Assembly (NCBI GenBank): GCA_002189035.1
Contig: NEEC01000009.1
Coordinates: forward strand, 992,001-1,056,000
Reading direction: 5' to 3'
Length of the DNA stretch: 64,000 nt
Source of the DNA: Utricularia gibba
Taxonomy: Eukaryota; Plantae; Magnoliophyta
The notes below the pieces were generated by a model. It saw only the letters and a list, made by a program, of their open reading frames with translations. It was not told the DNA's origin and searched no databases. Position numbers and translations under genes: made by a program. Positions 17,733 through 23,530 of the stretch are shown here, piece by piece (position 1 is the first letter of the stretch; each line of letters opens with the position of its first letter).

Positions 17733-18364
17733 CACATTACAAGTTTGTGACACACAAAGGAGTGGAAGGTCTTGCTTATATAGAGCAGGAGAAGAAGGGA
17801 GGATGCATATGAAGCTCAGCCACTACTGCAGAGGATGTGGGATCATGAGCCAACAACACAGACAAGCAATCATCATACTGTTGGATTGGATCCTCCATCT
17901 GTGATCTGTAAATGGCATTGCACAGCAAGTGCATCCATGGGAAAAGCCGAAAAGAGGAGTGACAACAAATCGAGCTGAGCACGCGCTCTCCGGAGAAGAG
18001 CATTTGCATAAGAAAAGAGAAGCTCAACAGGGCTCACTCTCCGCCTGCATAAGAAAAAGCCACTTTGATCGGGAAAGTAGACGGGCTGAAAGTGATTGGC
18101 AGGGATGGCTGCTTCAAAGAGATGCCTAGTTCTACTCCTCAAGTTTTATTAGAATAAAAATGGAACTCCTCACTTTGGAAGGAAACCAATGTCTCTTTGC
18201 TCTTCATTCCTGTTGCTGTGGTGCTTACACATTTTGCTCAATGAAATAGCTGTTTCACTCTGAAAACGCAGATGAAGTAAACTCCTCATGAATTTAGGGA
18301 AACTGAAGAAACCAACAGCATATCCCATCCAATGAATACAGGGAGGGCTGAGGCAAGATAGAAA

Positions 18365-19246
18365 TCAGATGCTGGAACCACCAAGAGCCATCACCTTGAA
18401 CTGCTCATTCATGGCCACAAGCTGCGCCTCTTTCGTGTCAAGTAAAGCTGTCAGTCGCACATTCTCTTCCACCAGTTTCTGTACCTCTGCTTCCTTCTGC
18501 ATCTTCTCATTTTCCAACTGAGCGTTTTTGGCTACCAGCCTGAGATATAGAAAGGTACATGATCAAGCCTTGGGACATGGCATATTCTGAATCAATACAT
18601 CAGTGTATCAAAATATTGCGTGCAAGAAGAAGATATCACGATGGGAAAGTTCACCATGACAACTTGATCATCTTTAGGCAACACATTTTGTGTGGTTTAG
18701 CAGCAGACATGTCATAAAGCAAGAGCAGTTTCATGATTCTGGTGAAATTTGTCCCTTCATTTAGCTTTAACTACCAGCTAAAGGCACACAAAGCAAATAC
18801 CCTCTTGTCTATTCGTCAATAAAGATGCAATCTTCATCTAGGAAATTATGACAGACAGATGCAGGAACAACAAAAGTGCCTAAAACCCAAACCGAAAGAA
18901 CTAAATTTTTTCGATCATTTTCACAATCAATCACCACAGCGACACGGAATGCAACTCAAGAAATAGGGCTTGTTACTACTACTAACCGTTCAAAGTTCTT
19001 CTCTATGGCCTGAAACTGCTTCTCGGATGAAATCAACGTTTCCCTTATACTGATGACACTGTTGACATAGGACTTCAACGATTCGAAGTCATGCTTGACG
19101 CGGTTGAGCTCCTCCTCATTCTCCGCGGCCCTTTGTCTCTGACGAGCACTTTCTTGAACCAAATTTTGAACCGTTTGCCTCATCTCGCTCAGAATACTGT
19201 TAGTTGCAATCGCGAGCTGCTCCATATCCTCCAAATTCAGAGACAT
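18365..19246 (-). CDS. Coiled-coil protein of unknown function (resembles the At4g36105/At2g17990/At5g66250 family, from recall); 5' end uncertain
   Basis: RQRQRAAENEEELNRVKHDFESLKSYVNSVISIRETLISSEKQFQAIEKNFER spliced (intron about 18540-18986) to LVAKNAQLENEKMQKEAEVQKLVEENVRLTALLDTKEAQLVAMNEQFKVMALGGSSI*. Confidence 0.8.
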
Positions 19247-20877
19247 AGATCTCAGCTTCGCTCCCGTTGCTGCACTCTTCTTGCCCTCTCTCCTTCCCCA
19301 GTCAAAACTCAACAGCCGCGGCTTTAACTGCGATAGGGACTACCAACAAAAAAAAAAGAACCACTCCTAATCAAATCTTTTTTAATTTTCACTTGTCATC
19401 TCTTTAGGGTTTTTTAAGTGGACCGCCTCAAATTTTGATCTTGCAAATCTCCATGTTATACTCTAGATCTTGGTCTTCCTTTCCCGTGAGTAAACCCAAG
19501 CTTCTCGTGTTTTGATAGGTAAACCATTGAAGCAACGGCACACCCATGGGATTTGGTGAAGGGAAAGTGCAAAAAAGGCGTTGCCTTTAGTCTTCATTGC
19601 AGAAAAAATGAGAGGGGCGAGATGGATTGAAGTTTTGGGTCCACTTCCCAAAGAAGATTGGTGGCCCTTGCTATCGTCCTAGTGTTTCCTCTTCACTTTT
19701 CTTCAACTTTGCTCCAACAATTATGCGCTAGTCATTCAATACTTTGGCTATAATTCAGCGCAAACTTCTTGTGATGATTGCATTGCTTGTTGGGTTCATG
19801 TCTGTTTGTTTTTGTGTATCAAAATCCCAACATTTTCTGATTCGGTGTAACCTGCACTGAAAGAAACTGGGGAGGCGTGTTGGGTTTCAAAGATGGTGCC
19901 TGTTGGCATTGAATGCTAAAAAGTTCCAGATTCACACATGGAGAGGCAGGGAAGCAATGTCTTGTGGCAGCTGAGATTTTCTGTTTGTGGATTGGCAGTC
20001 TCTTTCTGGGTATTAAGAAGTTGCAGAAAAGCAATGAAATTGATACACACACAGAGGACCAAATCTTGAAGATATTGAAAAAGAAGGGATGATTGCAATT
20101 TCCATACAGAGGGTTTGTACCATAACATGTGCAGTAGGAGAGGGGGAGATTTGAGTAGAAGCAATCAGTTAGAGTTCAAGGAAGGAAACTCACACACAGA
20201 CAACCAACCAACATATTCATGTGTTTATCCCTTGCATATATTCATATATGTATTACTGCTCTGTTTGAGAAACACTCAGAATGAAGGAATGAATGGGATG
20301 GTCCCTGGCTCTTGGTGCGTACTGTTCTAACATCTGCTAGCTTATATGCGTTTTGAAATTTGAATATGTTGTCCTCCCCAAGCTGTCATAGCAGCTACTA
20401 GCAAATGTGGTGCGTGCACTGTTTGATCATCTAATAATTTCCCTCGAGCTCTGGTCATCTCATTTCTATCAGCCTACAAGATGACTTAGCGATGCTCTTT
20501 TTATCTGCTGATGGGCTTGTTCTGAATGCTCCTCTCGAGCCAGACTCAGTCCACCACCGGCCACCGCCGTTAGCCAGCCGCCCATCGGCTGACATGATGG
20601 CTTGCTTGTCCGTTTGCAGAGAGATATGTATCTTTGATGTTCTAAGTGAACCCGAATTCTTCTGATGAAAATAGATCTTTTTTGTTGTGTAGTTGTTTAA
20701 AAAGTTTAGAGGGTTGTCGACATCAGCAGTCTTTCTCTCCCAGATATCTCTCTGATCGCAGAATCTCCGGTCCCATGTGCCCCACATCTCCTCCTCCTCC
20801 TCCTCTGTTTCGTCTTCTCTATATATTCAGTACAACCATCTTCGAAATCCCATTACCTGTTATTTTGGTTTTATTCT

Positions 20878-21790
20878 GTGGAACGCGCAAACCTGGCGGC
20901 GATTAACGACGACGGCGGCGGTGGAAAATCCGGGGCCGGATCAGTACTCTGCCGTCAGACGAGCACGAGGTGGACGCCCACGGCAGAGCAGATACGGATT
21001 CTCAAAGATCTTTATTACAACAATGGCGTGCGGTCACCGACGGCGGAGCAGATTCAGAGGATCTCAGCTAAGCTCCGGCAATACGGGAAGATCGAAGGTA
21101 AAAACGTCTTCTACTGGTTTCAGAACCACAAGGCTCGTGAGCGCCAGAAGAAACGCTTCACTTCCGTACTCCCTCATCCTCCTCATCCCCCGCATCCATC
21201 CCCCGATCAGCATCTCACCGTCGCCGCAAAGTTCAGCACACCCATTTCACCTTCAGGTTTAACCCCATTTTACAGTACCGCTCATCAACACAGAGCATCA
21301 TTGTTTGGTCTCAATTCCTTCACCCTTTCTACTTATAGGTGGATTTGGAGGTCCCTTGGCCATGGAGATGAAGTTTAGAGTAAGTATTCATCAACTCTCC
21401 AGAACTGCTAACTGATAATAAAAAAAAAAAAAAAAAAAAACAGACAACGTGATCCTCATTATTATATACATTCAGTGCATGTTCTTACTGTTGTACGTGA
21501 TAGGAGTTCGCTGTTACTCCCGGAAACGGCGGTGGCGTGTGTACTCCACAGAGCTTTGTATTTGACCCCTTTCCTCCGCGTACCATTCTTCTACGTGTGT
21601 AAAGTTTCCGATACGGGACGAAGAACCTGCGGCGAGTGAGTTTGAAACGCTGCCGTTGTTTCCGATCCGGGAAGAAATGGCGACGAAGCTAGGCCGTCAC
21701 GCCCGCGAGGTAAGTGTCGTCAGCGACGGCGCGTCTCTTGAACTCAGTTTGAACTCCTCCTTCCACGACACCGGAAACCGCCATGGCTAA
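20878..21790 (+). CDS. WUS: WUSCHEL homeodomain protein; apparent GTG start and a 1-nt frameshift in exon 3
   Basis: WUS-type homeodomain [31 protein letters not shown]...[18 protein letters not shown], small exon 2 [17 protein letters not shown] box ETLPLFP and EAR motif ASLELSLN in exon 3. Confidence 0.93.
21418..21440 (+). repeat. Poly-A tract in WUS intron 2
   Basis: Run of about 23 A. Confidence 0.8.
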
Positions 21791-23530
21791 GCTAACGAGA
21801 CAATGTAGTCCACGAAAGGACATTTGTTGTACGGTTTGCGTATTATTATTGGTTTTGATCAAAAGAAATTATTATTATTATTATTATTATATGTACATAA
21901 AAAAATCTTTTTTACATTGCAGTTTTATCAATTTTAAATTAAAATATATAAATTAAATATTATTTCATAATACATATAACATATCGACTCATTACCACAT
22001 AATACATTTAATCATCCAATCTTTCTCTCTCATACATTACATCCAATTTTTTACAAATAGAGTAGTCAATTTTATCATGCATTGAAAAGATAGTGACCAA
22101 TTTGTAATACACTTCAATGAATTATGTTATATCAGGGTCATTTATAAAAATGATTACCCTATTTTATATAATTTTTATATATATGATGACTATTTTTATC
22201 ATATATTCAGAATCAGTATGTCCAATGTGGCATAACTTTAGTTTCTGAAAAAAAGGGGGAAATCAACACCAGCATCGATTTGTGTGAAGTGGGATTTTAT
22301 GGGGATGCAATTGAGTAACTGAATGGCGGGGTTGGGCTCCCTCGAAAAGATGAGTCTGCTGTGACTGATTTTGAGCAGGTTGTGCAAATGGCAGTTTAGT
22401 CTCCAGAAGTATGTAATGATGAGGGCATGTCAATAGGCTCAGACAACAACATAGTAACAGACAAATTCATGCTTCCGGTCACATTCTTTTGTGCTCAACA
22501 GCACAGAGATGGACAGACAATCATCAAATAGGACACCAAGTTGAGGATGGAATGGGAATGGGTTGTTATGCATGTGGACAGAAGGGGGGTTTCCAACTTC
22601 CATAAAGAAATGGTGCGGGATCCATTCAAACTGTAAAGTATGTCGCCTTTACGCCTTGTTCTGGACAAAAAGGAGGCTTCCAGATTCAAAACGCACACCA
22701 AGACGTCCAAATCACAAAGATTTTGGTGTTCCCCTTTGCGGTTCAGATCTTTGATACTTTTGCAGTTTCAGGTACAGGGCACCCCATCTTATCTACAAAG
22801 AGAGTTTTTAGAACCAGAAGACCAGGATGGCAAATAAAGGACTTGGCAAAGTCATGCCAATATATACGAAAAATAATAAAACATTTGATTGTTTGTTTCT
22901 CTTTGTAGGTTAGTTAGAGCAGATAGCAGGCAAACAAAGGTCTTGGTTGCCAAATTCTCCTTTTGATACTTTGTTGCATCATCGGTCACGGAGAACATGA
23001 CTGGGAAAGAGAGAGGGAGAAAGATACCTTGGGCAAATCTTGATTTTAAATCAAGAACTCGCCAGCTTACTCCACCAAATCCGATGAAGCTGCAGACCAA
23101 GAAGAGTTGCTTCAAGTGCGTTGCATGAGGCCAATGCCAGGAAGAGTGGTAGCCCTTGCCAAACTGAAAGATGATTCAATAGACATTCAGAAGGAGCACC
23201 AAGTAAAATAAGTAAACAGAAAAAACTAAGACGAAATAATAAATTGTTTGCGGTTCGAGAACTAATGGAAGGGAAGGGAGGAACATTAGTCTGTTGGAAA
23301 CTAATATAAGATTCCCAAACTAAAGAGGCCATGGATGTTAATGGTCATCATTCCCATCACTGCGCGGCACACGAGAGCAACAAATTATTGATGTAATAAG
23401 CACTGGTAAAAAGGTCAATACCTGTAGCCATTACTGCATCGTGAGAAGTTCAGTACTCACGAGTTGATTCACTAATGCTAAATGACAAATGCTCCATATT
23501 TTCACGCCTCGTACATCAGAAGACAATGAC

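Follow-up and report, generated by a model that had tools for sequence, protein, structure and literature searches.

Can a WUSCHEL (WUS) gene that has no in-frame ATG ahead of its homeodomain still produce a homeodomain protein, and at which codon would its translation begin? The locus that raises this question lies in a 64,000-nucleotide stretch of the Utricularia gibba genome (contig NEEC01000009.1, positions 992,001–1,056,000; hereafter the window, whose own numbering is used throughout). We compared the window with contigs from two independent genomic DNA data sets (X1 and X5) and with RNA contigs from two studies (X6 and X9). The gene and its coding motifs are laid out as follows:

20878–21790, + strand: WUSCHEL gene, three exons, from the GTG position to the stop TAA at 21788–21790
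20878–21256, + strand: exon 1, encoding the N-terminal arm, the homeodomain and a Pro/His-rich linker (translation, Pfam, and the splice joint 21256/21339 in X6 and X9 RNA contigs)
20965–21147, + strand: region encoding the homeodomain, including the extra Tyr of the WUS type, LYYNNG (Pfam PF00046, residues 30–90)
21257–21338, + strand: intron 1, GT..AG, 82 nt (joint in X6 and X9)
21339–21379, + strand: exon 2, 41 nt, with the earliest in-frame AUGs of the spliced mRNA (21362 and 21368), both 3' of the homeodomain
21380–21503, + strand: intron 2, GT..AG, 124 nt, containing a poly-A run (joint in X6 and X9)
21504–21790, + strand: exon 3, ending at the stop TAA (read-corrected translation)
21647–21664, + strand: WUS box TLPLFP (translation of exon 3)
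21734–21754, + strand: C-terminal EAR-like motif SLELSLN (translation of exon 3)

The homeodomain of exon 1 matches Pfam PF00046 (E=2.6e-14, residues 30–90) and, in an alignment of 18 WUS sequences (17 from Lamiales), is identical at 62 of the 62 invariant columns. Exons were translated and searched one by one, and the named database entries that match best are WUSCHEL proteins annotated in Salvia, Sesamum, Antirrhinum and Olea. With the WUS proteins of Lamiales (Antirrhinum ROSULATA/WUS, P0054; Sesamum, P0012; Salvia, P0002–P0007) the gene shares its homeodomain, the extra Tyr and all invariant columns, together with the TLPLFP WUS box, the C-terminal SLELSLN, an acidic stretch, the three-exon layout and an N-terminal arm of similar length bearing an ND/EDGGGGK motif. 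It departs from them in that a GTG replaces the ATG start, in the length of its protein (approximately 235 residues versus 250–290, with a reduced middle region) and in being one of two copies. Judged from its sequence, the gene belongs to the WUS clade of WOX homeobox genes, fitting every tested feature of that clade but the AUG. As assembled, exon 3 is falsely truncated ahead of the WUS box: the window is without one T in a T-run at 21569/21570, a T that is inserted in X5, X6 and X9, and the WUS box and EAR-like motif come into frame with exons 1 and 2 only after this read-supported T behind 21569 is restored. The assembly shows a systematic 1-base deletion error in this region, at approximately 3 per kb.

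By direct reading, the WUS frame is open from an in-frame stop (TAG, 20707) through the end of exon 1 at 21256 and contains no ATG, in agreement with the initial annotation, which had described exon 1 as having none in frame. Where orthologues have ATG-GAA, this gene has GTG GAA CGC, beginning at 20878. The residues ME open every one of the 17 WUS proteins from Lamiales, as well as all plant WUS loci recovered from metagenomes, 17–26 residues before LCRQ; in the same alignment the GTG-start gene reads VE, 23 residues ahead of LCRQ. Aligned as DNA, tGTGGAAC in the GTG-start gene stands against aATGGAAC in another WUS locus. The orthologue alignment thereby upholds the earlier proposal that the GTG at 20878, with G at +4, occupies the usual WUS start. 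An A-to-G substitution in this WUSCHEL duplicate would have changed the ancestral ATG to GTG; this change belongs to our best explanation of the locus, which, taken whole, we hold to be about as probable as its negation. No WUS gene lacking an AUG was described in the literature searched. The elements around the 5' end that bear on initiation are:

20775–20906, + strand: out-of-frame ATG ORF, 43 codons, starting 5' of the TATA box (zero X6 RNA depth there)
20820–20827, + strand: TATA-like box TATATATT (direct reading; transcription start expected near 20850)
20878–20880, + strand: GTG where the ancestral ATG start stood, U at −3, G at +4 (orthologue alignment; G in X1 and X5 DNA contigs)
20893–20895, + strand: in-frame CTG, codon 6, optimal context aacCUGg, best near-cognate candidate (context rule, PMC7605272)
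20911–20956, + strand: predicted GC-rich RNA hairpin, starting 15 nt past CUG 20893 (folding versus shuffles)
21023–21025, + strand: earliest AUG on the mRNA, in frame +1 and in strong context (acaacaAUGg), which would yield an 88-residue product to TGA 21369–21371

The initial annotation had also read the two ATGs that flank the GTG as out of frame, and correctly so: the ATG at 20775 opens a 43-codon ORF ending at 20906, and the next one, at 21023, lies in frame +1 within the homeodomain. Its TATATA at about 20819–20826 is present as TATATATT, with the coordinates shifted by one base, to 20820–20827. Frame +1 is open over the entire exon 1 (20777–21262, 161 codons).

The GTG is the true base and no assembly error. 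The site lies deep inside long contigs of both DNA data sets. The X5 contig (spanning 19728–20998, depth 35) is approximately 1.1% diverged from the window and the X1 contig (19300–20984, depth 10) carries one substitution in 1685 bases; neither differs from the window at 20878–20880. All 16 substitutions and 6 gap letters of the X5 contig are listed, so GTG is certain in X5. For X1, one 1-base insertion among 1685 bases of the window has no listed position; that this gap is an insertion follows from the spans of the X1 record (1690) and the window (1685). Such an insertion could recreate an ATG only as an A exactly behind 20878, which X5 rules out for its own lineage, and it cannot bring the ATG at 20775 into frame, since this would need a deletion. 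An assembly or sequencing error, in which the true sequence is ATG and was lost through a substitution error or through the dropped A (TCTG[A]TGG) proposed in the initial annotation, would have in its favour this unplaceable insertion and an assembly that is error-prone, as had been suspected, for 1-base deletions elsewhere in the region: single bases are absent from the window at 19335, 20085, 20141, 20310 and 21569 relative to every read set covering them. However, these errors are deletions rather than substitutions (1 substitution per 1685 bases against X1), and the orthologue alignment matches a substitution better than an indel. Both DNA read sets read GTG, the depth-35 X5 contig with every difference accounted for and the X1 contig with no substitution there, and where reads with ATG at 20878 would have spoken against the GTG, the contigs of both show G instead. 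We therefore regard an error at this site as scarcely credible.

A mis-modelled 5' end is only slightly less improbable. Spliced RNA contigs from both studies have both introns removed, and the GTG-start copy is transcribed and correctly spliced. Contigs cannot fix the transcription start, which probably lies near 20850, approximately 25 nt 5' of the GTG: the X6 contig over exon 1 stops at 20880, X6 depth is zero across 20301–20879, and a coverage end 55–60 nt past the TATA box fits such a start. The ATG at 20775 was previously placed outside the mRNA, and this is probably right, given zero X6 RNA depth there and the TATA box at 20820. An upstream exon or transcription start that provides an in-frame ATG could make use of a good acceptor-like site, tctttctctcccag, at approximately 20743 inside the open frame, and a transcribed stretch (19300–20258) is located upstream. 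Yet the open frame at 20710–20877 is without any in-frame ATG, its translation as an upstream extension is unlike a WUS N-terminus, and the gap in X6 coverage is crossed by no joint into exon 1. Direct reading finds no AG acceptor directly at the GTG, and no upstream exon joined to exon 1, with or without an in-frame ATG, is seen in the RNA contigs of the two studies. Right ahead of the GTG, X5 further differs by one extra base behind 20872 (+1) and by A>T at 20873; the 1-base indel would disrupt any upstream extension and argues that the region 5' of the GTG is non-coding. X5 and the window differ at six places within the 100 nt that precede the GTG and at just two, each synonymous, within the 100 nt that follow, which places the onset of constraint approximately at the GTG.

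The upstream transcribed stretch is represented by a 1694-nt X6 RNA contig (depth 19, greater than that of WUS) that covers 19300–20258, between a minus-strand neighbour and WUS, and ends beside a variable site at 20259. It contains no ORF >82 aa and no Rfam match (an Rfam scan of 18300–22300 gave 0 matches), and could be either an extended 5' leader belonging to the neighbour gene or a non-coding RNA. The neighbouring feature, 1.6 kb upstream of WUS, is exon 1 of a small coiled-coil-like gene (18959–19246, − strand) whose nearest relative in the database, at 73%, is a partial hypothetical protein from Genlisea aurea, a match that places the genome in Lentibulariaceae.

With no in-frame AUG before the homeodomain, homeodomain-bearing WUS needs a near-cognate start. 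Three in-frame near-cognates precede the homeodomain, GUG 20878 (U at −3, G at +4), CUG 20893 (A at −3, G at +4) and AUU 20902, and a start at either the GUG or the CUG would yield a protein with the whole homeodomain. Two plant regulators, AGAMOUS (ACG) and FCA (CUG), have a main ORF that starts at a non-AUG codon. Among near-cognate starts in plants, CUG performs best, with ACG and GUG next; sites in use have a strong −3/+4 context, and non-AUG sites have been mapped genome-wide in tomato and Arabidopsis (PMC7605272). Under these rules, with A at −3 and G at +4, CUG 20893 is no worse a candidate than the GUG and, from its context, would be the more likely start of the two, GUG 20878 being poor at −3. 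Like AGAMOUS, FCA and the tomato and Arabidopsis sites (PMC7605272), the gene has no in-frame AUG upstream of its conserved domain and offers an in-frame near-cognate candidate with a purine at −3 and G at +4 (CUG 20893). It differs from AGAMOUS/FCA-type starts in that those are experimentally proven and kept between species, whereas the putative WUS start is known from one species only, derives from a mutated AUG and, at the ancestral site (GUG), has a weak −3 base. The hairpin at 20911–20956 was considered as an enhancer of near-cognate initiation and lies at a favourable distance from the CUG, but its stability does not exceed that of shuffled sequence (z = −1.45; 14 of 200 shuffles are equally stable), and it was not counted.

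We thus propose that the mRNA, with no in-frame AUG ahead of the homeodomain, would give rise to homeodomain-bearing WUS only through near-cognate initiation, at GUG 20878 or, more likely, at CUG 20893, while the majority of scanning ribosomes would continue as far as the out-of-frame AUG at 21023. Because this first AUG is out of frame and in strong context, WUS output should be low, and from the GTG-start copy it should amount to a small fraction of normal. The outcome would be a translationally weakened, low-output WUS copy with the paralogue as a buffer. Weak near-cognate (GUG/CUG) translation of this copy is, in our assessment of the sequence, an evenly balanced proposition.

The same scanning order allows a different outcome, in which all products are without the homeodomain: an 88-residue frame +1 peptide from AUG 21023, a C-terminal WUS-box and EAR fragment from AUGs 21362 and 21368, or both. 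AUG 21023 is the earliest AUG and has the best context, and the stop of its ORF (TGA 21369–21371) overlaps the in-frame ATG at 21368 as AUGA, a stop-start at which reinitiation might release the C-terminal fragment as a small interfering protein. Eukaryotic reinitiation past an 88-codon ORF is inefficient, however, and there is no sign of selection on either product. The frame +1 ATG lies, in the DNA alignment, in YNNG codons conserved across other WUS genes, and would be a by-product of codons that all WUS genes conserve. We consider products of this kind very unlikely to be all that the gene makes.

A stronger challenge to near-cognate translation comes from the second WUS copy that is present in the genome. 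Paralogous contigs, one in X1 (record 2) and one in X5 (record 12), match the window at 91% over 20937–21132 and at 93% over 20711–20765, and the N-terminal segment in between differs. As this copy exists, a null allele or decaying duplicate is about as plausible as dose tuning. The GTG-start gene would then be a nascent pseudogene or null copy whose protein was abolished by the ATG-to-GTG change, whose function is carried by the paralogue and whose intact look reflects recent loss, a possibility that we rate short of even but take seriously. In a duplicate pair, pseudogenisation most commonly begins when one member loses its start codon, and fractionation after whole-genome duplication with loss of a start codon would likewise leave a paralogue and, as for a first disabling hit, the start codon as sole lesion. 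The coding comparison of the window with X5 is compatible with this: ten coding changes (4 synonymous, 6 non-synonymous) accompany a single 3-nt deletion, such that 6/10 coding differences alter the protein; pN/pS is 0.47, not significantly below 1 (P=0.19 against neutrality); and coding divergence, at approximately 1.4%, is not below the 1.1% of the upstream non-coding sequence. The poor −3 base of the GUG points the same way. Against loss, and unlike the fractionation case, the GTG is common to two lineages approximately 1.1% apart (window/X1 and X5), yet neither a frameshift nor a stop is found in three haplotypes, the sole coding indel is 3 nt long, and expression and splicing persist. The read-corrected gene shows no further disabling lesions of the kinds sought (frameshift, stop, lost splice sites), and the GT..AG introns are used in RNA. 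By a rough estimate, a neutrally evolving copy would have remained intact with a chance of ~0.25. The homeodomain is unchanged, two studies still find correctly spliced mRNA, and the divergence pattern shifts right at the GTG.

Several features of sequence variation accompany this comparison. The 55-nt block at 20711–20765, 5' of the TATA box, is 93% identical in the paralogue and is followed by 170 nt that are unalignable; it may be a conserved proximal promoter element. Over 21151–21790, X5 and the window show 7 exonic differences past the homeodomain, 6 of them non-synonymous, and, with the poly-A run set aside, 0 differences at 206 intron positions. Two exon 3 haplotypes occur in X6, and the variant 21613 A>G turns an Ile into an in-frame Met.

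Turnover of the WOX family in U. gibba has been noted in the literature. Searches for a WUS gene from Lentibulariaceae in the protein database and among metagenome contigs found none, matching only other families, and a metagenome scan for WUS loci recovered those of poplar, Arabidopsis, grass and other plants, all starting ME, with no bladderwort relative among them. Among Logan contigs the nearest, L001 and L002, were rejected as sister WUS genes because their DNA is distant from that of the window; a Genlisea aurea contig reached via the neighbour gene (73%) is, at 2 kb, too short to extend to WUS; and a JGI match (P0123) was set aside as a route to a relative, the WUS locus of the same metagenome (L024) being from an unrelated plant. 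The exact ORF products of the window have nothing on record in other public assemblies.

WUSCHEL acts dose-dependently in the shoot stem-cell niche, and the bladderwort lineage is famous for its blurred organ identities. It is conceivable, though in our view unlikely, that the non-AUG start is maintained by selection, with one WUSCHEL copy obligatorily GUG/CUG-initiated and conserved in sister Utricularia species. A low translation rate, set by context, would in that case fix how much of a mobile stem-cell regulator is made in plants whose shoot body plan is aberrant, and the out-of-frame AUG at 21023 would act as a built-in ribosome sink. Because the gene has no ATG and a false exon 3 frameshift, automatic annotation will miss or mis-model it, and WOX gene counts for this genome should be read with care. 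If translation from near-cognate codons alone is true, this WUSCHEL copy would be a natural, ready-made case of dose setting at initiation; if the copy is dying, it would date a very early step of duplicate loss, in which the start codon goes first and transcription and splicing are still intact.
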